From Setoptus koraiensis (taxonomy: Eukaryota; Animalia; Arthropoda), in NCBI GenBank assembly GCA_048013815.1, contig CM106586.1:17670001-17734000 (forward strand): a stretch of 64,000 nt of DNA, given 5' to 3'. How positions within the stretch are numbered: the stretch's first letter is position 1; the number at the start of each line of letters is the position of its first letter. Both the position numbers and the translations under genes were made by a program. Below are positions 7,501-60,800 of this stretch, in pieces. The notes beneath the pieces are model-generated. The model saw only the letters and a program-made list of their open reading frames with translations, did no database searches and had not been told where the DNA came from.

Positions 7501-8388
7501 TTAATATACAGTTGCGACAAAAACCCATTTCTTAAGATTGGAAAATTTACTCTTGATAGATTGTTTCGTTTCTTTTGAGCAATAGGATTGTAGATAAAAG
7601 TTTGAGAATAGATAAATGAATATACAAGAGAATATAATATTTGTCATGAGGAATACTTTTGGGAATTGGCAGGATGGAATAAATAATGGCTGAGCCGAGT
7701 GGGCGATCATTATGAAGAATTGCACGATTTGAGCTAATGTCAAGTATTTTTTCCACCATAGATAGGGTTGTAGTGATTGATAAGTAGCCAAAAAGTAGTA
7801 GGAATACATAACGGTGTGAATGATTGTATTTAAGAATGGGAATATAGCTGAGTTGCCTCCTGGCGCAAATTTCACAAAGAACCAAACTGCTATTGGCACG
7901 GAAAAGTGATGGAATACGTGAAAGGCGCTAACCTGATTGAATTTCTTTCTCAATGTAAAACAGATTGTGTCGAAGAATTCAATGAGACGCGAACTCATAA
8001 ATATGTATCCAAGCTTGATGATGGCCATCGATTTTGGGTCTGTCGATGTGTGATCGATGGGCCTACAACCCCAGATGTCTAGGCCATAGTTGAGTAGGCG
8101 GCACGCTTGAACAACTCCGTAAACATTGAGTAGTACCATAAACAAATTGTAGCATCGGATGGGATTTTTCAAATCGAACGGTTTCCTGTCCATCATGAGG
8201 CGAGGACCTAGTACCTTGACAAAGTACAGATATAGTAGACATAGTCCCACAACGGGCCATGGTCCACCGCCTAGCATGGGGTATGATTTCACTCTGGCGT
8301 CTCCATATTTGTCCCAGAATCCCTGATAGATGTACTCAAATGTGGACTGGACGTTTTCGACTGGTATAACTTCGGCAAGGCCGCTCAT
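7501..8388 (-). CDS. ELOVL: Very-long-chain fatty acid elongase (ELO family), intronless CDS
   Basis: HVFHH histidine box, EFFDTICF.LRKK, NTIIHTVMYSYY and WWKKYLT..QIVQF motifs; multiple TM segments. Confidence 0.95.
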   Translation of the reverse strand: MSGLAEVIPVENVQSTFEYIYQGFWDKYGDARVKSYPMLGGGPWPVVGLCLLYLYFVKVLGPRLMMDRKPFDLKNPIRCYNLFMVLLNVYGVVQACRLLNYGLDIWGCRPIDHTSTDPKSMAIIKLGYIFMSSRLIEFFDTICFTLRKKFNQVSAFHVFHHFSVPIAVWFFVKFAPGGNSAIFPFLNTIIHTVMYSYYFLATYQSLQPYLWWKKYLTLAQIVQFFIMIAHSAQPLFIPSCQFPKVFLMTNIIFSCIFIYLFSNFYLQSYCSKETKQSIKSKFSNLKKWVFVATVY

Positions 8389-18308: not shown

Positions 18309-20644
18309 GCGTTGCGTAATCGTTGCAGTGCATCGTTGTTATTAGGCTGCTAGCTGTTCGTGCGAGTTGTTTGCGTTGCAGTGGCCGGCCAATCGAGTCG
18401 AAAATTCAATTCAATGCCAATTCAAGGCATAAATAGAAATGGCTCAATACAGAGACGAGTGCATAAGAGCAGTAATGAGCAGTAATGAGTAGAAATGAAT
18501 GAATGAATGAATACGAAAATAGAGGACGAGGTCAGCAAACGTTGTCCGTTGTCGAAGCCACTCAATATGCCGCTCGTTTTGCGAATACTGATGATGCCAT
18601 GTTAATGACCTGATGCGCTGACCATTGGCCTGATCACGCGCCCGGCTCATGTCCGTTTTTCGGGTTATAAAACTAAATTATATAAATAAAAAATTTCTAT
18701 TTTTTATGCATGGGATTTGGCTCGGATTCAACGGATTGCCGGCCTGGCCGTACAGCTTGTGCCCATCATAATTGCCATTTCGGCCGATTGTCGCCCAACT
18801 GTCAACAGCACAATGCGGCCATCCGACATTCCGATAGTCCGACGATCCGATAGTCCGACGATCCGACCGACAGGCGGCAGGGGGCAGCAAAACGGAAGCG
18901 GCTGCGATTTCGCGGTGGGCAGTTGGCGAAACAATTGCAATTTTGTTTGCATGGCGCCACGTTGTGCTGGCTCGGGGACGGGCGCCCACATTGACGCAAC
19001 GAACCGCGCGACAAATCGCGAAACATTGGAGCGAGTTCGTTTGACTCAAAACATTCGAGCGAGTTTGCTCGGCTTGAATAATTCGAGCGATCGCTCAATG
19101 AGCTCATCGGCAGCCAAATCAAAAGCGCCCCGACGAGATAACACTGACGACGTAGCACTGGCTGTGTGAGGCACCTTGCCGCATGATATAACATAATTTA
19201 AGTTGATATAATATAATATGATATGAAATGATATAATATGATGTAATATAATGTGTGCGAGCAACAAGTGACGTAGCGCAGCATGTGATACGTAATGGTA
19301 GCGATAAACTGATGCTAAAACTGGTTCTATCGCAGCACAACGTGGCCACAACATCAACATATTACATAACCTCGGCAAATCTCGCAGTCAGTGCGTATGT
19401 AATAAATAGTGGCTTCGATCGGCTGTTCGTTTCATTTCGTTTAGTTTCTTTTCTCTTATCTTGTCTTCGGTTCGTGAGTTAGTGAGCTCGTGAGCAAGTG
19501 AGCGAGTGATTAGCATGCGGTCTGATTGCAGAATAGTTAGCTTGGCGCTGGAATGGCGTCGAAATGACACTGCCAGAGCTAACCCTTTTGCCGAGATCCT
19601 TTGCTCTTGGACAGCGGTCTCGATAAGCGGCCCACTTGACGGACCAATGAGCATGAGATATGTGAGTGAGCTCACAATTGTCAGTTTCAGTCAGTTAGGC
19701 CATTGACCAGCGTTCTATCAGTATCACTGTCAGTTACTAACTCACTTAATCTTATTTTTAACACATTTACATTTACTTTTCATGACGCAATCATGCACAT
19801 ACTACAAAAAAAATCAAATATAGGATGATGATGATGATGCAACCATATGCTCACCTGTCGCCCAACTAGCTGACCATATCGATTGGAGTGGCACCTGGCG
19901 GCGGGCACTTCCTGTTGAGCACGAGACACTCTAGCTGTCGGATTTGAGCTGCGAGCGTGGTTGTTGTACAAAAAGAAAGTGAAACGCTCTTGGCTGGCCA
20001 ATTGTTTGTTGAGCGAACAACAGACAAGTTGCGTAACAGTGATAATAATAATAATAAATGTGCTCGCTCTCTTCGATTGAATCGGCTCGCATCAACAATC
20101 AATTTTATCCGCTAATGGCCATAGTAGGCAGGTACAGGTAGAGACAGCCGAGCGACAGCAAATCGGCTCGATAGCCAGAGAGCGATATAGCCAGAGCGAG
20201 TGAGTGAGAGAGAAAGAAAACAAAGTGACAAAGTTTGCGACACACGCAAATTTACAACGCAACGACTTGAGACTATTATTACATCACCTCTTAGCTCTTT
20301 GTTTATATGTTTGTACGTAAGTGGCGCAACACTGGGCCACTTGGCTACCTGGCTTCCTCATTGGCCATACCGAGAGCGACATAACTGTGGCTATTGTTTG
20401 CACTGGCTAAAACATTGATGGTCTCGCTGTCGTTGTTGCTGTCGCTGTTGCCGTCGTTGTTGTCACTGGCTCGGCAAACAATAAACATGCTCATGTTGGC
20501 TTCTGGGCACCTGAGCTGGCCGGCAATCTTTTTCTCCGTTGCTCTTTTGTTTGCTGTCCACACCGAACGCCGATGCCAATGCAAGCAACACAAGTGATGC
20601 AACAGGCGAGCTCGACAAGTGGACAAACGTCATTATTATGAGCG

Positions 20645-20756
20645 CAACAGCAACAGCAGCAACAACGACAACAGCAGCAACAACGACAACAGCAACAACA
20701 ACGACAACAGCAACAACAACAACAGCAACAACAACGACAACAGCAACAACAACAAA
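20645..20756 (+). repeat. (CAA/CAG/CGA)n compound triplet repeat
   Basis: Direct reading. Confidence 0.9.
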
Positions 20757-21420
20757 CGATAAACAATTGCCCATTGAGACTCAACAAGATCATTGCAGCT
20801 GACGGCCTCATTGATGCAGTTAGCGCGCTCTGTCCGTTGCGCAACTGTCTTGGTATGAATGTCTTGGCGTAACTGTCTGGACCGTACACGGCAACGGCAA
20901 CGGCGGCGGCGGCGACGGTGGCCGCGGCCGCGGCTCAATTCGAATGGGCACAATTGCGCAAACAATCGAACGAACAATTAATTTGCATAATACTTTTTGC
21001 ATGCACTCTCCGTCAATTTGTTGTATGTAATTTTTGCCAGCAGCAGTAGCGGCAACAAACAGCCACAATCCGAATCACATCCGATCGGTCGCCATGACAG
21101 CCCGTTCGCTTGAGAGCTTCTAAAACCGAAAGTCAAAACCGAGAGCCAAAATGCGTCATGTGTGTGTGTGCGCCCTGCGTGGGCAAGCGCGAATGTGCGG
21201 CCACTTGTGTCGGTCGGGCCGGCTCCGGGGGCGACGACCAGCCGACGCATTGTCTGCAAATTGCTGGTGTCGGCCAATTGAATCAACGAGTTGCAGTGTG
21301 CAATTTGCAGCTCGCGACTCGCGTCTCGCAGCTTGCAGTTTGGAAATTGGAGGCCAGAGTTCGCGCGCAAATGAGCAGTTGGCTGTGTGACGATGGCACA
21401 ATTGCCAAATGTGCCAAAAC

Positions 21421-47856: not shown

Positions 47857-50800
47857 ATGCCGAGGTACACAGCCACTCATTATGGGCGCGAATCGAATAC
47901 CCATGTCACGCCCAGCGCCTCAACACCAAATCATCAGGCAGGCAAAGAGTTAATAGTTCGCCTATTGGCCGAGGTATTTCATGTGTCTTCTCGGGCGGGT
48001 CAAGTAAAATGGCAACAAGTATCGAATTCGCTCATACCCATAAGCGTTTATTCTAGAACACCGCGAGCTTGGCTCAGCCATTGGTTGCAGATAATATATC
48101 CATCGTCGTCGTCATATCAACTTAATAGTAATGGCAACCAATTTAATAGTAACACAAATAAACGTGTCAATTCTAGAGATATTATGATATTCCAAATAGT
48201 TGCCCATCAGCCCGCAACGAGCCAAAAATCAACAGCCACGACAAAGTGTCAACAGCATCAGCAGCAGCAATTAGTATCATCCTATACTAATACCAACAAT
48301 AGTAATAATGGAATGGCCAATAATAATTATTTTCGACTGTTAGACGTCAAAATGGTGCAACCTGGAACTAGACTGGGCCAGGCAAGCGAATATTTTATCT
48401 ATTGGAAAGACACATGCCTAGATGAAACATGGGGCCTGAATTTTAGTTCCACTCAGGACGCAAGACAATTTTATGATATCTGTACGCTCAATTTAGTCAA
48501 TTTAAATCCAAATCTAGATTCACAATTCTTCAAGAACATCATCCTCTATCAGCAGCAACAGCAGCAGCAGCAGCAACCCTTTGTGGCAAATTATAATTAT
48601 AATAATCATGATAACGAAAGCAATAATTTTATTATTAACAACCTCAATTCGGGATACAATAGTAATCATCTCAACAACAGTAGGACACGTAATGAAAGCA
48701 TCAACAATGATAAAGATAATAGATTGTTTGCTCAAGAAATGGAATGTACAACATTAAGCACTTATAGGAAAAAGCAACATGGTCAGCCACAACAACAACA
48801 ACAAATATGTAGAACACGCACTACACCCGTGGGTCAACAACTCCGACACAGTCAATCGTATCACGCTCTTTCACATAACCAACAACAACAACAACAACAC
48901 CAGCAGAGTCAACATCAGGCCAGCCACATTAATGGTCCTCAGCAGGGCTGTAGAAGTTACACTAATACTACTACTACTAGCAACGTGAAAACAATAGTCC
49001 CCAAAAAACAGCAACACCAACAGCGAGCTAGATTGCGCTCGCGCTCAGCTTCCCGTCATTCAAGCCAACAGACAAAATTTGAGCTAGATTCACAGGTTGA
49101 CCCCAATAATGGTCCCTCAAGGCTTGGAGTGGGCTCACAATCGATGCCGGTTTCGCCAGCTAGGTGCTACTCAACTAACCAACAACATCAGCACCAGTAT
49201 TCAGACAACGATCTTGAGGGCGACGCAGTCAGGCATCACCCACAATGCTCGTTGTTATTGAAGCACACAAATTGCACCAATAGAGTAGGCTATAGGCAAC
49301 AGCACCAACAACCGGTGCCGGTTCAAGTGAACAATAGTCAACATTCAACATTTCAAAATAACAACAGTAGTAGTAGTGCCCTTACTGCAAATGCTGCGAA
49401 TCGTAAAAAGCAATCAGTAAGCCCCATTGAGTCCACCGTTACACCAGCGAGATTTGCTATGGCGTCCGATGCCGAACAACCACAGTCAATTGGTCATCAG
49501 AGGTCAGCATTGAATGCGGAATTTCACCATCGCAACGACAACAACAGCAACCACAATAATAGTAGTAGTGGCAAAACAAATAATGCACCGCCGCCTATAC
49601 CAGCGCATCAGAGCTCTGTGACATCTTCACAATCGTTGCACAGTAAACGCGAAGGTCGTGTCCGTTACTTGGGTAATGTAAGCCATCATATGGTCCAACA
49701 ACAGACTAGTGCCTCTTCCAATCAATTAAATTCTGCAACTTCATTGAATAACACTGGCGTTGTCAACACCAACAAACAGCAAGCCAGCGGTAAGTGTTCG
49801 AAAGGCTTAATTTCAGACTATCAGACTAATACTTTGAATCTATATAAACAAGGTAGTAGCAGTAGCAGCTGTCCAATTCATCAAAAGCAACAATTAGAGA
49901 AGACATCACAACAAAATCACCAGAGAAGAAATAATAACTTTCATCATGCAATGCAGGAGCAAGTGCAACAACTATTGCCAAAATCGTCTCAAGTTATTTT
50001 TAATTGCAAATGTGCTTGTGAAAACCAAATATTGACAAATGCTCATAGTTCAGTGAAACTTAATCTACAAAAACAACAGTTACTTGGCCATGACGGCGGA
50101 TCAGATTCTGATCAACTCCAATTTCGTCAAAATTGGTTTAATCATGAAACTGGGGATCTATCCATCATGAACGATGAATCTTTACCTCCTCCTGTCAAGC
50201 CTAGATCTACGAGTGAACAAAGAGGCGCAAACGTATCTTCGACAACAGATCAAGAGATAAAACAAGACAATTCACGTCGATCACAAAAGAAATCAATGAT
50301 GCCCGTAGATAGTTCAATCTCATTTTCTAGCATGTCATCGCAAACTAACGCCAGAAATGCGCGCTTAGCCAGAGCTCAATATGCCCGCTCACGTAATCAA
50401 AATGAGTTTCGTAGTTTAGATGTTGGGGGCGTTCAGCCGAGTCAATCACAAATAGACCTGATAAATGAAAATCTGCGCCAGCATCATAAGCAGTTGAACA
50501 AGCAACAACACAAATCGAGAATGAGCAACGGTAAACAAGAGTTTAATACTCTTAATAGAGAATCCACTTTAGATTCGAAAGATAAACAACAGATTATAGC
50601 TAAAAGTAGAAGCACTGACGATATGCGCAATGTAGCTACAACAACTGATGATCTGCCCATAGATCCGCAAACTCTGAAGACGATGCTCATGTTAAGCTCA
50701 CAATCAACTGGACAAGATGTCGACTCGACAATTCAACGTGATTTTGAGAAACAGACAAATATTGAATCTAACAGACAAGCCTACGAGCAACAGATTAGAA

Positions 50801-52575
50801 GTCCCAGAAAAAAGAGGGCCGCCACATTGGCCCTGTTGTCAAATAACAGTCTGATTTGTTCCAGTAACCATCATGACAATCAAATCTTCAACTCGCCTCA
50901 ATCGAATCCAGCAAGTCAGAATAGAGCTCTAAGTTTGGCTTTGGATTTTAGCGATATCAATCGGAGTCGATCGGCAAGATCCGATACGGGACGAAGAAGG
51001 TCTCTAGAGCGTACATCCTGTATTGATTTCGATTCACCAGTGCCAACATTTAACTTAGCCTTCACATCTAGTGGTGGTAAAGTCACAACACCAAGGCATC
51101 ACCAGGGTGATATATTATTGGACGCTCCGTCGTCGTTACCGGCCTATAAAAAGCACTACCGTGAAGATTTATCGGCCACTATTGAAGATCGAAACGACTC
51201 CTTTAGAAAAGGCAGTTACAAGGACGATATTAATAATGAGGTCATCGATAATACGTTCCATGACTATGAAGATCGAATCAGGTGGGCGATAGAAAACAAT
51301 TTTATAGATGCGGATCAACGTCATAAAACGACAAGTTTACGCAAAGTAGTTCATTCTGCTGGAGAATATAATGGTGGAGGCTCAAAATCGTTTCACTCAT
51401 GCCCGAATAGTCTGCGAAAGAAGAAACAAACAATCGATTATTCTTACAATCAACGAGATCGCTCTAATTACTTATCTGAGATAGAGTTGAATCGTTTGTC
51501 ATCGAGGAAACGAAATGACGATATATATGATTACTACAACCAACATGACGATTCTAACGACGGAAATTATAGAGATCTTATATGTAATTCCAAGGCTTAC
51601 TATGATGAAGAGTATGATGAAGCGCTTGGCATAGGCATACTGAATACCTCGTCTTTTGATCTATATGGCAACGGTAGCATATTTGCGACCAATCAACATG
51701 GGCAACATCAAATGAATGACGACAGCGGGGAAGAGGACGACCAACACCAGCAGCTAATGTTTACTCGGGCGTCGTCTCGTCGGTCCAGCACTAATTGTAA
51801 ATATGGGTTATACGATAGCGATGACGAAGAATTAAATGGAGACGACGATATTGATGATGCTAATGATCACGGTGAAGATGATGATAATGACAATATCGCA
51901 GCGTTCGATTTAATTAAGCTCAATCAACACAGTAGAGTAGATCCGAGTCTTCCCTCTGGCCGAGAACTGAGAACTAGACAACCAACAGAGAAAGTGATCG
52001 AGCGCGAAAGAAAGAGAGCGCGTGCGGTAGATGCCTATGATCAAACAATGTTGCGATATTGTAATAGGATATCAGGCGATAATGCACGAGAGAGGAGAGC
52101 GAGAAGTGAGCCGTCTCCTATTGAGATATTGCTCTCGCGATCCATGGACAATGTGCAGAAAAAGATGCAAGAGGTCCAAGCTGAACTGGATGTAATTAAA
52201 CGAGGTGAAGATTATAACCGTCTCAAGGAACGTACACAATCGTTTTTGCAGTCGTGTCTTAAAAAATCAGACAATAAGGAGCATCAAGTTGTCAAATCAA
52301 CGAAAGATGCCAATTTAGATGGATCACGTTTACAGGTACGATTGAATTACAGCGACTCAGAGACGAATGCTGGCAAAAATAACAAGATTAGGCATACAAG
52401 TACACTTGGCGACGGTGGTGATAAGGCTGAAGATGACGAATTCTTTCAACATAAAACTATTTTTCGCAAAATAAAGCAGCCTCTAAGTTCTAGCGACAAC
52501 GAAGTCGAGAAAAATATGAGACCCGTTTGTCAAGCTCAAATGGAAACTAAAGGAGCCGCTGGGAAACATTCGAAG
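47857..52575 (+). CDS. sif: still life (Tiam-family RacGEF) type-1 isoform, giant 5' exon with WH1/EVH1 domain; PH/RBD/PDZ/DH exons expected beyond the window
   Basis: LLAEVFHVSSRAGQVKWQQVS and LLDVKMVQPGTRLGQASEYFIYWKD...TWGLNF match the Sif type-1 N-terminal WH1 domain as recalled; phase-0 AAG|GTAAG donor at 52576; exact start codon uncertain. Confidence 0.8.
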
Positions 52576-53294
52576 GTAAGTAATAAATATATGTGGAACC
52601 TTCAGAGAACCAGATAAATAGATTCCCTACTTCGTGACATGCACAATATGTTTAGCTATCACCATTTGTATGAATTTGCAACAACAGTTCCGCACTCCAG
52701 AGGCCCCTCATTTTTAGAAGCCTCTTTGACAATTGTTTTTGCACCTGATCATCCATCTTTTTCATGTGAATCTTTAAGATAGATTGGTATTGATTAAGAT
52801 TGATCGATTAGTGGAACTATTGGTGCCTGAGAACGATGACAGAAAACATTTTCATCATGCATGCATTGGTTGTGTCAGTCAAGTTAGTATGGTTAGTTAC
52901 ACAATAGCATCGGTTTATCGCTCGCTCGCTCTCTCTCTCTCCCTCTCTCGCTCTTTTCCTCCTGATCATCTATGTCAACATGTCGATAAGTTCTGTCGGT
53001 GTCTGTCTCAAGCTCAAGATTTAATGTCTTTACTATTCTTTATTGGTTATACTTACCAACTTAAGTCAAGTCGCCGAAGCTTAGAGCGCCACGACGAGAG
53101 AAGCTGGATCTTGTTCAGGTCCCGAATCACGTACTGCTGATATAACGATCATCACTATCAACTGAATCGATGCACACCATACAGAGATGAGTTAGCTTCA
53201 TGAAATCATCATATTCATTGGGTTGGACGTCATTGAAATTCCGTCTCTTGAAACGGCCAAGTGTTCCCCCACCCTCTCTCTCTCTCTCTGCGTA

Positions 53295-53392: not shown

Positions 53393-54974
53393 CATTTTAT
53401 CCCAAATCTACGAAGACGCCACCAAATCCCAAGTACCCTGGAGCGTAAGTCTAGAAGCAGCTCATCAATCATCTGCTAGACCAGCATAGTCCTTGAGCCC
53501 TATATGTTTACACCCTCGAGTGGAAAACCCTCGCACAACGTCTTTGTTGAGACTACTGAAAATACGCTCAATAATGATATATATATAAATAGCCAAGTTA
53601 TATACGTGGTCTAGCGGCGTCAACAGATGATGTGTGGAGCCAGCACTCACCTGGCGTTTTTAAACGTATCCATGTTCCCACACACAGGCTCTATTGAAAT
53701 CTCTAGTGCCCATTCCCTTAAGGGCCTCAATCTATTCAGACTGGACTCTCCCTCGAGTGTTAGTCTCTTTTTATTATTATTTGTCATATGATACTAACAA
53801 ACTTCATCATTACTCTTGCCAGTTCCTTCAAAAGCTGATGATATATATGTGTCCGGTAGGTAGTGGTAGTGAGATGATTCAGTGTGGAACTTGATTAATC
53901 AGAAAAGTGGGCTTCATTTGTCTGCTTTATATCGAGATTTTGTGTTGAGGGTTCTTTCTTAGAGCCCCCAAGTCTAAGGTGATCTCCCCAAGCTTGCTCC
54001 GTCGTCAGAACCTCACACGAGCATTATTAGATTTTTTTTGTTGACCTTGATCCTGCTAGCTCCTGCCTTGCTCTCAAATTGAGTCTCGATTGTCAACCAA
54101 CGACTGTGCTTCAACTGTAGCGAAACTGTGTAAGTGCACAGCTTCGTGACAGATGGTTTGTGTCGTGAGATTGAGTAAGCAACCGATAATATACATATAT
54201 ATGATATATATATATATATAAATTTCTTGAATTGTTGACACACTGCAGATTGCTGCCAAGCCGGAAAGATTATGGTGGATAAAGAAGAAAATGATGATTC
54301 TCAGAGTGGATAGAGGGTTGCTAGAGCCTGACAGCTCATATTTTAGTGCAAGGAATATATCTTGTTTCCACCAAAATTCCTCGTGTGCGAGCTGGGGGGA
54401 TTCGATAAAGCAGCTTGATTGATCGCTATTTTCTCAATCGACCAGACTCGAGCTACTACCGAAATGAGCGAGAGGCCTCTCTCTTTTTACGTCTATATAT
54501 CTTGCTCTTTGCACTAGTTGTATATATTCGTGTATATACATACATAGCGATGATAAAGACAGGAGGATATATCACTTTTTAGTTTCTGAATTTCGAGAGA
54601 TCGTTGCATGAGCCTCTCAATTTTTCATGTCATCAAGTGGCCGTCCAAACGAATTGTTTCTATTACTTATAAATATTTGTGGCGAGAATGGACTGCTCGA
54701 ATCCAAATGTCTGGCCTAGTCAACTTGACGATTTCATCATCTGGATTCTTTCGCTTGCCATTCTTGCCAATGTGTAGACAATCGGCTGATTATCAAGTTT
54801 AGTTTGTATCGTCGGTTGAGAGATAGATCAAAAAGCCCAGGTTGTAGTAGAAGAACTTGCCCGCCTTTACTCGTGATCCTCGTTCTCTTCAAAATATGAC
54901 GGTCTAAAACTAAGAGAGGGCGAATAGCAATCGCCAATTCTAGTCGAGCATGTGGCACCGGAAATTGCAAAAAA

Positions 54975-55130
54975 TCGCCTTAACTTTCAATAAGAGCGGA
55001 GTTTGTTGCTTCTGGCGTGTCCCTATAGCAATTATTTGTGTGAGTCAGAAAGGAGAAAACTAGGGTTTTTGCTATTATTAATCTTAATATAAGGACTCAG
55101 ACGCAATAGAAAAAGACAGCGAGCGACTAG
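54975..55130 (+). mobile_element. 156-bp segment present only in unit A with Helitron-like ends (A|TC...CTAG|T, no TSD)
   Basis: Removing 54975-55130 restores the unit B sequence GCAAAAAA|TCATTG exactly; no convincing subterminal hairpin seen. Confidence 0.4.
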
Positions 55131-55349
55131 TCATTGTTCTCTTTAATGGAAATGGAATCGGACCATCTCGTATGGTAGACACTTTCCGAGCATATACGAT
55201 ATGTATCGTAGTTGAGTGTGTATAAATCTCTACTTATGCTCCTCTCTGGCGTGCTCCGTCGTGTCACTTTGTCTTGCCTAGTCCCAAAAACGACCAAGGC
55301 CTGGCTCGTCACTTGCCACTTCTCTTTTGTCTCCTTTGTTTCAGCCTTT

Positions 55350-55754
55350 TTATGGATAGCTCACAAGCCTGATGGTCAATCCTCTTGGTCCTACGCGATT
55401 CGACTGGTTTGCACAATTAGAGAGATTTGAACAGTTTGTGCAATTTGTGCAATTTGTGCAATCCCTGCAACTCACACAGTTGGTGCATTCTCTGCAATCC
55501 CTAGAACTCACACAGTTGGTGCAGTCCCCGCAATTTGAACATTTGGTGCAATCGCTGCAATCGGAACAGTTCCTGCTCGATGTACAATTCTTACAATCTG
55601 CACAGTTGTTACAGTTCAAACTAGATGTACAATCTCGGCAATCTTTGCAGTTTTTACAGCTTGCACAGTCTGTACAACATTCACAATCTGTGCAATTTAT
55701 GCAGTCTCTGTTCGGATATGGCCTGTGAGGGTTTTGAGCCTCTGGGTTCAACAT
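55350..55754 (-). CDS. (Cxx)n cysteine-repeat protein, copy A (134 aa, 30 Cys)
   Basis: ATG in ACAATG context; strict 3-residue Cys periodicity; paralog in unit B with internal indels in frame; upstream TATA box conserved. Confidence 0.75.
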   Translation of the reverse strand: MLNPEAQNPHRPYPNRDCINCTDCECCTDCASCKNCKDCRDCTSSLNCNNCADCKNCTSSRNCSDCSDCTKCSNCGDCTNCVSSRDCRECTNCVSCRDCTNCTNCTNCSNLSNCANQSNRVGPRGLTIRLVSYP

Positions 55755-56110
55755 TGTCTGTCACGCTACAACGCAAATGTATGACCACCTTTGCGAATCT
55801 ATGTCAAGGAGATGGTTGGCCGCTGCTTAGTTAGCCGCGCTATCGTGTTTGTTGCGAGCGTCGGAACTAATGTCTGATGGTGTGTTGTTCTTAGGGGCCC
55901 AAACTCTTCTTTTCTTTGACTCTTGAGCTTTTAGCGTGACACAAGATGGTTGTTTGCTGTGTGAATTATTGCCGCTGGTTATACTCTGCTTGCTTGTAAA
56001 TTCTAACGTCGTAATTCTATCGTCGAAGCACTACGATGTTGCTGATGGAAAATACATTTGACTTTTTATTTAGCTATTGGGAACAATCAATATTTCAGGA
56101 AGTCGCAACC

Positions 56111-56118
56111 CTTATATA
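56111..56118 (-). promoter_or_regulatory. Candidate TATA box (TATATAAG) of Cys-repeat gene A
   Basis: About 360 nt upstream of the ATG; conserved in both duplicate units. Confidence 0.45.
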
Positions 56119-57167
56119 CTAAACTGCAAATGTGAGTGCACTAGCATAAACACATAGATAAATACAAATTAAGCACGCTTTCAGACTGTTCCTCTAATAC
56201 GCCATACAATCGCTTGCAGAAACACTGATACAGGGGAAAGCACTTTTACCCACGATAGAGGGGCGCTATTTTCGAAACAACTACTTCCAGCGGTCTAAAT
56301 TCAGGCTGATTATCTAGGTGCAAACAGTCTTGCCACAGCGACACATGAACAACAAACAGAGAATCACAACAACATCTGGATTGTTGATGCTCCGAAAGAA
56401 AGAAAAGCGAGTACATGCATGCCACTACAGAGCTGTTCAGTTGGATTTCATGATGAGGGCACTAGCTGATTAAATGGCTAGCTGATAGGCGGGAATTCTG
56501 GTTTGGGACCCGTCCGAGCGATGTGTAAGCGGAATCACACGCAGAGCTCGAGAGTGGTTGCTTATTTTGGCAAAGAACAGCGATTGACAGGCTGCATTTT
56601 GGCGGCATTACATGCTGTCGGTTCACGTCTCAAGTAACGGTTTGCGCAACTGTTGGCAAAGGCCAGAAAGAAGAGGTGAATTTGTTGCCAGTTACAATCA
56701 TTATGGCTGGATTCTTTCGCTTAACATTCTCGCCAATGTGCAGACAATCGGCTGATTATAGAGTTTAGTTTGTATTGTTGTTTGCGAAATAGATCAGAAA
56801 GCTCAGATTGTAGTAGAAAAACTCGCCCGCCTTTGCTCGTGATGCTCGTTCTCTTCAAAATATGGCGGTCTAAAATTAAGAGAGGGCGAATAGCAATCGC
56901 CATTTCTAGTAGAGCATGTGGCACCGGAAATTGCAAAAAATCATTGTTCTCTTTAATGGAAATGGAATCGGATTGTCTCGTATGGTGACGGATACAATAT
57001 GTATCGTAGTTGAGTGTGTATAAATCTCTTTTTATGCTCCTCTCTGGCGTGCTCCGTCGTGTCACCTTGTCTGGCCTGGCCCCAAAAACGACCAAGGCCT
57101 GGCTCGTCACTTGCCACTTCTCTTTTGCCTCCGTTGTTTCTGCCTTTTTCTGGATCGCTCACAATGA

Positions 57168-57539
57168 TCAATCCTCTTGGTCCAATGGTAGACCTACGCG
57201 ATTAGACTCGTTTGCGCAATTTGCGAGATTCGAACAGTTTGTGCAATTTATGCAATCCCTGCAACTCACACAGTTGGTGCAATCTGTGCAATTTTGACAG
57301 CTAGTGCAAGCCTTGCAATTGGAACAGTTTCTGCTCGATGAACAATTCTTACAATTTGTGCAGTTGGCACAGTTTGTGCAAAATGTAGTATCACTACAAT
57401 TCTGGCTAAATGTACAATTTCGGCAATCTTTGCAGTTTGAACAGCTTACACAGTCTGTACAACATTCACAATTTGTGCAATTTATGCAATCTTTGTTTGG
57501 ACATGGCCCGTCCGGGTTTTGAGCCTCTTGGTTCGACAT
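57168..57539 (-). CDS. (Cxx)n cysteine-repeat protein, copy B (123 aa, 29 Cys)
   Basis: ATG in ACAATG context; same N-terminus (EAQNP..P.PN.DCINC) and C-terminus (CSNL.NCAN.SNRVG) as copy A. Confidence 0.78.
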   Translation of the reverse strand: MSNQEAQNPDGPCPNKDCINCTNCECCTDCVSCSNCKDCRNCTFSQNCSDTTFCTNCANCTNCKNCSSSRNCSNCKACTSCQNCTDCTNCVSCRDCINCTNCSNLANCANESNRVGLPLDQED

Positions 57540-57844
57540 TGTCTGTCACGTTACGATACAAATGTATGACCACCTTCGCGAATCTACGTCAGGGAGATTG
57601 TACTAATGCACTAATGTCTGATGGTGTGTTGTTCTTAGGTGCCCAAGCTCTTCTTTTCTTTGACTTTTGAGCTCTCAGGCTGTCTCGAAATGGTTGTTTG
57701 TTGTGTGAATTATTGCCGCTGGTTATACTTGTAAATTCTAACGTCGTAATTTATCGTCGAAACACTACGATGTTGCTGATGGAAAATATATTCGACTTTT
57801 CATCTAGCTACTAGAAACAATCAATATTTCAAGAAGTGGCAACC

Positions 57845-57852
57845 CTTATATA
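57845..57852 (-). promoter_or_regulatory. Candidate TATA box (TATATAAG) of Cys-repeat gene B
   Basis: Homologous position to 56111-56118; about 306 nt upstream of the ATG. Confidence 0.45.
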
Positions 57853-60800
57853 CTGAACTGTAAATGTGAGTGCACTAGCATAAACATATAGCCGAATACC
57901 GATTAAGCACGCTTTTAGGCCGTCCCTCTGATACGCAGCATAGCTGTTCAAGCTGATTATCTAGGTGCAAACAATCTTGCCACAGTGAACAACAAACGAA
58001 TAAACACAACAACAAACAGAGAAACACAACAACATCCGCCCTAGCCTGTCGACGCTGGGACAAAAGGAAAAGTGAGTGCATGCCACCACAGAGTTGTTCG
58101 TGAATCTCATGATGAGGGCACTAGCTGATTAAATGGGTAGCTGGTAGGCCGGCAATTCTGGACGGCGGCCCATCTGAGCGATGTGTAAGCGAAATCACAC
58201 GCAGAGCTCAAAAGTGGTTGTTTGTTTTGGCAAATGACAACCACTGGCCGGCTCCATTTCGGTACACGTTGTCGGTTGACGTCGCAAGTAACCCTCAGTG
58301 CAACTAATCGCAAGCGCCAGAAGGAAGAGGTGAATTTTGCTGCCAGTGACAGTCATTATGGCTGGATAGATAAAAAGATTAGTAGTGCGCACACATACAC
58401 ACAAATGTTCGGTTAGATATTGTTTTGGCTACTGTGGACCGTGTTGATACGTGCTAGAAATGGACCAACACCAGCCGAATCAACTCAAGCGAAAGATTCA
58501 AATCAACATTTATCTGGCTGGCAATCTCAAATCAAGGATGACGTGATAGCGCCAGCGCCAGAGTCTAGATGCTATTATTTGATTGTCCTTTCTGCATCCT
58601 CTCACCCAAGATACCATCTCATATGTATGGGACAGCATCGATGTGAAACCAATGTGTGTAACCATTGGTATCAACCATGGCCACCAATGGCTGGCCAGCG
58701 AAGCCGCCATAGCCGAGCTGACCTTCGATCGATGGTGTTGCCGCGAGAACAGAGTTCGTTATTACCCCCTCGCCACACTACTTGTAGATAATTTCGGCCA
58801 GAACCCCGAGCACCCGCTCAACCGACCGAATGGTTCGAGCGCTACCGGCTAAACACTGCACTCCCACGCTCGCCGGGGTGCCCCTACATGCGAGCCGACG
58901 GGATGCCTGCGAGCGTTTGGCCTTGTCAGCTGGCCCACATTTCACTTGGGGCTCTGACCAGAGGGCCGAGAGAGCCAGCGAGATATAATATAATATATAT
59001 ATATATATTTGTGCCGTGCATGAATCAGTAGTCTGGCTGTGCTCTCTATGGATACTTATTTTGTCGGATAATAGTTTGATTCAAACAGACGACCTTATTG
59101 CTGGCCACTGTGACATCTTGCGGTGCCCACACAAACTGCGACCAGCGACGCAAAAAAAAACGTGAACCGTGTCGACGAAATGCTCGAGGCTCCGCCGGCT
59201 ATGCCTATTTCCATCGTCAATCTTTTTACTCTGGGGCACACACACAATTGAAAAACGATGTGGCTCGCATTATTGGTTCGCTAGGAACGCAAACATGCGA
59301 CCAACGGCGCCCAATAAAACAAGAGAGACGGAGAGTTAATCAATATTTAAGTAATGATAATCACATAATACGATTCATAACTGACCTCTGCAGAGCCAGT
59401 AGCAAAAAATGCGTTGTCACCAGTTAGCAGAGCTGTTATCTGGCCATTGGTTGGACGAGCTGTCGGCCATCCATTGGCCGTGTTTCGCCTTTAGACGATG
59501 GCAATTGCGAACTGGCTCGCAGAGAATTCCGAGCGGTCAATTTATCGGCCTCCCATTGTCTTATCGGTCGTCACTTATCACTATTTGGCTTGAGGCAAGT
59601 GACAAAAGTATGTGGAGGGCGCCAGTACAACTCTATTTTCGTCGATTCCATCCAGTTGGCAGTTTGTCAAAAAGATAACGCATAAATCCATCGTGTGGCG
59701 CTGCCCACCCGTCCATTGTGGACAAACTACTACTGCCACCATCGACAGTGTTTTATTTTTTCCCTTCTGTAATTCTTGCATGCCGAGCCTAGAAATGGGC
59801 ATCCGAGCAGAATTGTCTTACTTGACTGTCAGCGCCTTGCTGGACCTCTGTTCACAATGTCACTTTGTACGATGAACTCTCTAAAGTGAAATTAAAAGGT
59901 CCTCCCCTCTGCGTCAGCCAAGACCAGCTTGAGATCTCGGCAAGCAAGTGGGCTCGTTGTAGGCTCTGAACCTTGTTTTGTTCTGTTCACCATTCGATCA
60001 GCGGGCACCAACTGCCTGTGGTTACATCATATAGTATATTGTCATTTGTGCGCCATCTAGCTGATTAGTGGGGCACCAACAATCGATGGGAGCCCGCTAG
60101 GGATAAAAGAGTGAAGAGTTTATGTCTCACGTTTCTATATAGGTACAGTTGGCTCATTGCAGCAATAGTAGTCCTGATTTGTGTGAGAGGGCGCCTTATA
60201 CTGTGATCTCAACCTAACGAACGAGCCAATAAATCAATTAGCTAAGACTACTTGCACCATATCTAATACAACTAGCTGGCAACCAACTGTTCAGTCTCAA
60301 TGTGGAGCTGTAACAAATTCCCAATATTACAAGAACACACATTTTCGCTGTTTATAGAAACTGTATCTGAGCTGCATTGTTACCCTTTCTTCAAACACAC
60401 AGACACAATCAGAATAAATATCGTCGGCGATCAGGCCGGCGATATCATAACCGTTACATATTAGTTACTAAATCTTTGCTCAATCGTTCCGTGTTTCCCT
60501 AGGCCCCAATAGCCCCGACGCCTCTAAGACACTTCTTGTGGTGTATGTGTGTGTGTGTGTTAATCATCGCGGTTATAGGATCGCTGCTGGCTGGGCTTTA
60601 GGCTGAAAGCTGATAGTGAGCTGATCAGATTTCCCAAATCAAGAGGTTTAACGGATCGGCAAACTGAATTGTTCGATTCAGTTGGCCAAGATCGGGCTAG
60701 AACTAATCAGGGCTAAATAGTCGAGTTAGAGCTTGGAAGCTATTAGTGTGCCGTCAAGTAACAAGGCGGACCTTTGTTCAGTTTCTTGTATATCTAGAGA

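Follow-up and report, generated by a model that had tools for sequence, protein, structure and literature searches.

A 64,000-nucleotide stretch of the genome of the eriophyoid mite Setoptus koraiensis (assembly GCA_048013815.1, contig CM106586.1, positions 17,670,001 to 17,734,000; hereafter the window) contains two neighboring open reading frames (ORFs) in which cysteine recurs at every third residue. The question raised by this locus is what such proteins could be and whether the ORFs are genes at all. An earlier note on the DNA had described them as paralogs from an unrecognized family, either metal-binding or folded as a beta-solenoid. The ORFs arose by a recent tandem duplication and have diverged by approximately 13-15%. 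Quite probably, they are new members of a catalogued but uncharacterized family of solenoids with a cysteine core, resembling the antifreeze protein (AFP) of the beetle Tenebrio molitor (TmAFP); this estimate covers family membership and fold class jointly. The whole favored reading, in which the pair are selected members of this family with a metal-thiolate core, is given an even chance.

The duplication is an exact two-copy tandem of approximately 1.8 kb, delimited by blastn self-comparison and MAFFT alignment (Table 1), and no third copy of the unit is present in the window. Flank identity between the units is 85-91%. Contigs from independent runs span the junction between the units at 56706/56707 (56230-56941 in run X1 and 56238-56935 in run X2), so the tandem arrangement is no assembly artifact. 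The encoded proteins are 62% identical (E 5e-43), and the lengths and cysteine counts given in the earlier note are borne out along with the paralogy.

Both proteins hold a strict register, as had been claimed. From C18 onward, Cys occupies every third residue (C-x-[N/D/S]); copy 1 has 34 such units and copy 2 has 32. Units in which Cys is replaced (SLN, SRN, SRD, LSN, and QSN in copy 1; SQN, TTF, SRN, LAN, and ESN in copy 2) stay in register, and the replacement is mostly Ser. Cys spacing is nearly all CxxC, with a single CC. Cysteine content is 22-24%, aromatic residues are scarce, and the residues that flank Cys or would point outward are N/D/S and T/K/R/S/A in both proteins. TCT has zero occurrences in either protein, and a TxT ladder was likewise not found in them. 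The repeat of copy 1 starts with the N-cap D-C-I-N-C and finishes with the C-cap C-S-N-L-S-N; the mite C-caps are CSN-L-SN and CSN-L-AN, and DCINC is the N-cap in the mite proteins. Copy 1 also carries a 36-nt internal tandem duplication that is missing from copy 2, for which Tandem Repeats Finder reports a period of 36, 2.4 copies, and 84% matches, and which corresponds to a 45-nt indel between the copies. The x residues have a weak 12-residue period, at 0.33 versus approximately 0.2 in copy 1 and 0.22 versus 0.20 family-wide.

The family to which these proteins appear to belong is already catalogued, and the earlier description of it as new does not hold. The hidden Markov model of phrog_15341, whose function is not assigned, matches copy 1 at E 1.8e-15 and copy 2 at E 4.1e-13; the match covers profile positions 37-139 of 276, which is the repeat part only. 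A HMMER search, run exhaustively over 1.84 billion representatives (threshold E<=1e-3), returned 846 relatives in phages, bacteria, fungus-like organisms, and other eukaryotes. Most of the 846 relatives are phage or bacterial and carry a (C-x-[DN])n block between other modules. The fungus-like relatives are P0013, P0014, P0065, P0085, and P0122. P0018 combines a RING domain with the repeat, and P0088 is lipoprotein-like. P0133, from L003 (GCA_023614345.1), is a multi-exon eukaryotic gene for a signal-peptide lipocalin with an inserted (CxxCxx)n block, and thus the domain is also present in secreted animal proteins. A profile search over a similar length range added 274 further relatives, nearly all unnamed, and a word-based protein search gave 6 weak matches.

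Phage homologs are found in 22 GenBank records by tblastn (Campylobacter, 17; Vibrio, 3; Flavobacterium, 1; Aeromonas, 1). One of them, YP_010093418.1 of Vibrio phage 1.238.A, shows 42% identity (E 2e-15 pairwise) and is annotated as "insect antifreeze protein" under InterPro IPR016133. For Campylobacter phage CPt10, the annotators recorded weak PF02420 matches. Clusters of the AlphaFold database include Dothideomycete-type entries auto-named "CXXC-type domain" and "Metallothionein", as well as T1KV81, a protein of 153 aa with 42% identity. From its accession series, we take T1KV81 to be a protein of Tetranychus urticae, which would give the domain to a second mite lineage. NCBIfam at E<=1 holds no family for either ORF. 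Our literature searches on CXX-repeat and Cys-solenoid proteins, mite antifreeze proteins, and phage antifreeze-like proteins returned no paper about this family, which also goes unmentioned in the Aculops lycopersici genome paper.

The likeness to the family exceeds what composition would produce, in that the caps are shared. Family members start with [DN]-C-[IW]-N-C and end with C-x-[NDG]-L-x-[NDG], and the mite proteins follow both patterns. NINCINC, comparable to the mite D-C-I-N-C, is found in many members; the position past the final Cys run is most often Leu (72/253 members), as in the mite CSN-L-SN; and the insert of P0133 includes a C-x-N-L-x-N cap as in the mite proteins. The mite tail N-Q-S-N-R-V-G is similar to the tails of P0030 and P0070. 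None of the 150 matches listed has a counterpart to the mite N-terminus or tail.

The fold was predicted using AlphaFold2. The model of copy 1, from a family alignment of 56 sequences, has a mean pLDDT of 75.9 and exceeds 90 for residues 20-70, and the model of copy 2, from 62 sequences, has a mean pLDDT of 67.9. Both models place a bridge residue at every third position. Among the best VIA-align matches of both is 1EZG, the structure of TmAFP. The copy 1 model aligns over 82/82 residues (Z 7.6, root-mean-square deviation 3.1 A, 24% identity), and the copy 2 model also over 82/82 residues (Z 6.5, 2.7 A). These modeled matches are supportive, not decisive. VIA-align also matched the larger right-handed beta-helices TibA and Ag43, and left-handed helices fit the models only at 9-10 A. 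Shape matches in the ESM Atlas reach a TM-score of 0.70 and are hypothetical phage and Bacillota clusters. At the sequence level, the mite pair alone matches 1EZG at E 0.0066, and a family profile of phage, bacterial, fungal, and mite sequences matches it full-length at E 1.6e-7. This last match suggests that the beetle AFPs are a derived offshoot of a far broader repeat family carried mainly by phages.

The domain would be a narrow right-handed beta-solenoid with 12-residue coils like that of TmAFP. In the TmAFP 12-mer, TCTxSxxCxxAx, residues 2, 5, 8, and 11 point inward and are Cys, Ser, Cys, and Ala. Because this geometry turns every third residue inward, it would explain the every-third register of the mite proteins, in which all four inward positions of a coil would be Cys, with Ser as the usual substitute. 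The 12 residues of the internal duplication in copy 1 equal a coil of TmAFP-like length. The Cys-ladder solenoid and the beetle AFP likeness proposed earlier are supported by the profile match and by both models aligning to the whole of 1EZG.

Differences between the two copies indicate whether the ORFs have been maintained. Both copies keep the Cys frame open, which is not so for the antisense frame. The Nei-Gojobori ratio of nonsynonymous to synonymous substitution (dN/dS) is 0.36 overall, 0.07 for Cys codons, and 0.49 elsewhere. A neutral simulation that used the transition share and substitution spectrum of the flanks, together with the observed number of changes, predicts a loss of approximately 8 Cys codons, whereas the copies show no more than 2 (P ~0.002). 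The count of codons with an altered amino acid is 25, below the 31 expected (P ~0.02). Cysteine codons have been kept under purifying selection since the duplication, and this selection is visible only on cysteines; the check on dN/dS and preferential Cys retention proposed earlier came out positive. The lack of stops is uninformative, since the probability of no stop arising under neutrality is 0.22-0.29. Were one copy neutral, approximately 4 Cys losses would be predicted, so one copy may be dead. Indels of 27 and 45 nt inside the repeat preserve the frame, and an 11-nt indel alters only the tail. The earlier note had seen both features correctly. Frame preservation is rejected as a sign of selection, since both repeat indels span a whole number of 9-nt units. 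On balance, it is somewhat probable that the ORFs are a gene under selection.

The nucleotide pattern bears on whether the Cys frame is coding. In copy 1, T is found in 30/34 units at position 1, G in 31/34 at position 2, and C and T in a ratio of 16:17 at position 3. Across both arrays, positions 1 and 2 are near-fixed, position 3 has C/T 34:31 with a purine in no Cys unit, and the other six unit positions, the middle codon among them, are free to vary. The resulting TGY-NNN-RAY unit fits a coding sequence. The rival view, that the array is a 9-nt minisatellite or that an antisense (Q-x-x)n frame is the real product, draws on DNA repeat periods of 9, 18, 27, and 36, on three near-identical TGCACAAAY units, and on an antisense ORF that stays open for 118 aa in copy 1 and shares its wobble positions with the Cys frame. 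The antisense frame was rejected as a coding frame because in copy 2 a stop at 57295-57297 interrupts it and the 11-nt indel shifts its ATG into another frame. The near-fixed positions 1 and 2 beside six free ones speak against a minisatellite, and the translation, caps included, fits an independent protein family. A noncoding or antisense origin is therefore highly improbable. A more serious alternative is that the pair is an unexpressed relic, an old insertion of a phage- or bacterium-type (CxxCxx)n sequence that was later duplicated and is now silent or decaying, its frame staying open as TGY-NNN-RAY rarely makes stops. Several results favor it and weigh against the reading of the pair as selected, metal-binding solenoids. 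The coding sequence has diverged as fast as the flanks (14.7% and 13.0%), with no codon position favored by the substitutions (14/15/17), so any constraint is confined to Cys. The repeat is open in several frames, the tails are frameshifted relative to each other, and a TATA box lies 313-364 nt from each ATG with a short ORF in between. The ORFs are not annotated, and neither they nor a close ortholog are present in a collection of 15 billion proteins, as judged by a word-based search, the HMMER search, and exact look-ups of the full and contig-truncated ORFs; close orthologs are also absent from JGI metagenome contigs (4 loci at 38-40% identity) and GTDB contigs (1 locus at 33% identity). No transcript evidence was obtained for the locus. 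The three runs that contain it (X1-X3) have flat depth over genes and spacers, and their reads are therefore DNA-like. A control search with the elongase gene ELO found 14 "RNA?" runs, X18-X20 (share 1.00), and four poly(A) RNA runs from 2026 (X21-X24). Of these, X18-X20 and all 14 "RNA?" runs contain ELO and are not listed for the Cys locus. These missing listings are weak evidence against strong expression. In X18-X20 (organism E), either the Cys genes are unexpressed in RNA-type runs or the locus is absent through presence/absence polymorphism. As for the fold and its proposed use, the VIA-align Z-scores fall in the tool's "common" best-score range, and Foldseek found no significant match in PDB or Swiss-Prot, the likeness to TmAFP coming from VIA-align and the sequence profiles only. 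Neither ORF was assigned to a Pfam-A family by hmmscan at E<=10, PF02420 and the metallothioneins included. Metal binding is purely inferred; AlphaFold models no metals, and the TmAFP core is very tight. Against a relic stand the retention of Cys codons, the fewer than neutral amino-acid changes, and the conservation in both copies of the ATG, its context, and the full N- and C-caps. A relic is possible, at less than even odds.

The remaining alternative concerns function and holds that the mite secretes a beetle-type antifreeze or ice-binding protein, laddered by disulfides, for overwintering. The predicted superposition on the whole of TmAFP, the sequence similarity to 1EZG, and the clearly extracellular nature of some family members (P0133 and P0088) agree with it. 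The N-termini (MLNPEAQNPHRPYPNRD and MSNQEAQNPDGPCPNKD), however, are polar and, judged by eye, lack a hydrophobic stretch, in keeping with the earlier reading that a signal peptide is absent from both ORFs. An in-frame TGA is located 3 codons 5' of the ATG in both copies, and no conserved upstream signal-peptide exon was found in the aligned units. A hydrophobic ORF at 57875-58081 (minus strand), 5' of the TATA box, was considered as such an exon and rejected, as the frame of its unit 1 counterpart is broken by 5- and 13-nt indels. With neither a T-C-T/TxT ladder nor a Pfam AFP match, the ice-binding reading is not upheld. Ice binding appears improbable from the sequences, and a secreted antifreeze protein very unlikely. 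The favored product is instead an intracellular thiolate-core scaffold, given that a signal peptide and a Thr-x-Thr ladder are both missing and that the relatives are for the most part cytoplasmic proteins of phages or bacteria. Each coil would read CxxC-xx-CxxC, a classic tetrathiolate ligand set, and the solenoid would fold around or buffer metal ions (Zn, Cu, Cd) rather than bind ice. Full disulfide bonding of these proteins of approximately 30 Cys is unlikely, because there is no secretion signal and the closest relatives are cytoplasmic phage proteins. Metal-thiolate binding is rated the likeliest function, though at well below even odds. A bolder proposal, which we consider rather doubtful, is that all-Cys (CxxCxx)n proteins could form a distinct solenoid class with a tetrathiolate metal column, in which each 12-residue coil would supply one site for a linear stack of metal ions; the beetle AFPs would be a derived, secreted offshoot of this much older and mainly phage-borne family, and the mite pair would be a domesticated horizontal copy acting as a cytosolic metal/redox buffer.

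The host is an eriophyoid mite because the single-exon ELO (7501-8388, minus strand) encodes a protein 82% identical to a Fragariocoptes setiger protein; it is also 97% identical to a Logan protein. Three runs show the Cys locus joined without a break to mite flanks. Codon use of the Cys ORFs is host-like (GC content at third codon positions, 0.43 versus 0.47), and the locus has TATA and poly(A) motifs in the eukaryotic style. Horizontal acquisition is plausible given that phage or bacterial proteins, at 40-50% identity, are the nearest relatives; if it occurred, it was not recent.

Putative regulatory motifs are shared by the two units. Both ATGs have the context GACAGACAATG, in line with the ACAATG starts described earlier. 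The conserved TATA box is likewise confirmed as TATATAA in both units, though far from the ATGs, and would be the promoter of the ORFs. Each putative 5' leader has a short upstream ORF between the TATA box and the ATG, at 56057 and 57803 (minus strand), of 8 and 12 codons; both share a stop (...YFPSATS*) and are in frame with the main ATG. A search for metal-response element (MRE) cores, which the earlier note had advised, found one before each TATA box and no enrichment in the window (75 versus 87 expected). The paired cores are a weak lead and may be chance, because the motif is not enriched. An ATTAAA hexamer conserved past both stops is presumably the poly(A) signal. Rfam has no match in 52.6-59.5 kb.

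Table 1. Features of the duplicated cysteine-repeat locus, in window coordinates.
Feature	Position	Strand	Details
Tandem duplication unit 1	54741-56706		1966 nt; holds ORF copy 1 and 5'/3' flanks
Tandem duplication unit 2	56707-58367		1661 nt; holds ORF copy 2
ORF copy 1	55350-55754	minus	134 aa, 30 Cys; stand-alone (CxxCxx)n domain
ORF copy 2	57168-57539	minus	123 aa, 29 Cys
Copy 1 repeat region	55398-55703	minus	34 tripeptide units; DNA unit TGY-NNN-RAY
Copy 2 repeat region	57201-57488	minus	32 tripeptide units
Internal tandem duplication	55447-55534		36 nt = 12 residues, CTNCVSSRDCRE / CTNCVSCRDCTN; in copy 1, not in copy 2
Antisense ORF	55372-55728	plus	118 aa, Q at every third residue; wobble positions common to Cys frame
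TATATAA, unit 1	56112-56118	minus	364 nt 5' of copy 1 ATG
TATATAA, unit 2	57846-57852	minus	313 nt 5' of copy 2 ATG
MRE-core TGCACTC, unit 1	56134-56140	minus	~15 nt 5' of TATA box
MRE-core TGCACTC, unit 2 twin	57868-57874	minus	~15 nt 5' of TATA box
ATTAAA, poly(A)-signal-like, unit 1	55142-55147	minus	202 nt past copy 1 stop
ATTAAA, unit 2 twin	56952-56957	minus	210 nt past copy 2 stop

Single, long exons encode many of the genes in the window. The earlier note named a supposed sif intron as the setting of the Cys pair. The Q/N-rich ORF of 1586 aa at 47857-52617 (plus strand), taken there for sif, has no Pfam domain at E<=0.01. No clear exon was seen in the 11 kb 3' of this ORF (52.6-64 kb), including 58.3-64 kb, which is unusual for a streamlined genome. 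The ORF at 20491-20889 (minus strand) has long poly-Cys runs (CCCCCCRCCCC...) and looks like a TGC/GCA trinucleotide repeat, not a Cxx relative.

If expressed, the pair would be, as far as our searches show, the first reported solenoid resembling the insect cysteine-rich antifreeze proteins in an eriophyoid mite. It would also represent an all-Cys form that is uncharacterized, though it occurs in hundreds of proteins from phages, bacteria, fungi, and giant viruses. The role of four Cys per coil in a reducing cytoplasm, as a metal column or a disulfide ladder, would become testable, as would the origin of the beetle AFPs and the retention of a foreign-looking gene pair in a streamlined eriophyoid genome. 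If not expressed, the locus is an ordinary decaying duplicate of low-complexity sequence.

Four known systems are comparable to the mite pair. The heterocycloanthracin/sonorensin precursors also have Cys-Xaa-Xaa repeats and are bacterial ribosomally synthesized and post-translationally modified peptides that mature through a cyclodehydratase (Haft 2009, PMC2674419). The mite ORFs differ from them in the x residues, the caps, and the eukaryotic context, and identity with these CXX bacteriocins is ruled out by the lack of an NCBIfam match and by the eukaryotic genome.

Metallothioneins, like the mite proteins, are small, rich in Cys, poor in aromatic residues, and without a signal peptide, and the CxxC spacing of the mite proteins would suit thiolate ligation. 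Classic metallothioneins are shorter, use CxC/CC motifs, and form metal-induced clusters, whereas the mite proteins have one CC only and a repeat fold that is predicted to be rigid.

The phage proteins of phrog_15341 share the (C-x-[ND])n repeat, the N-cap, and the C-cap with the mite ORFs. They carry in addition an N-terminal "GYW.D.NGN.W" module and a C-terminal domain, both of which the mite ORFs lack, and the mite ORFs are found in a eukaryotic genome with host-like codon use.

The beetle AFPs of Tenebrio molitor and Dendroides (thermal hysteresis proteins; 1EZG, PF02420, IPR016133) are a counterpart in predicted structure, as the mite models share the narrow right-handed beta-helix, the 12-residue coils, and the inward orientation of every third residue. 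Ser is the usual replacement at a core Cys in the mite proteins, comparable to the Ser of TCTxSxxCxxAx. Beetle AFPs have a Thr-Cys-Thr ice face and a signal peptide for secretion into the hemolymph, and the mite ORFs have neither, nor a match to PF02420. The host is a beetle in one case and a mite in the other. Finally, the inward set of TmAFP is composed of two Cys, one Ser, and one Ala, whereas the mite coil would contain four Cys.

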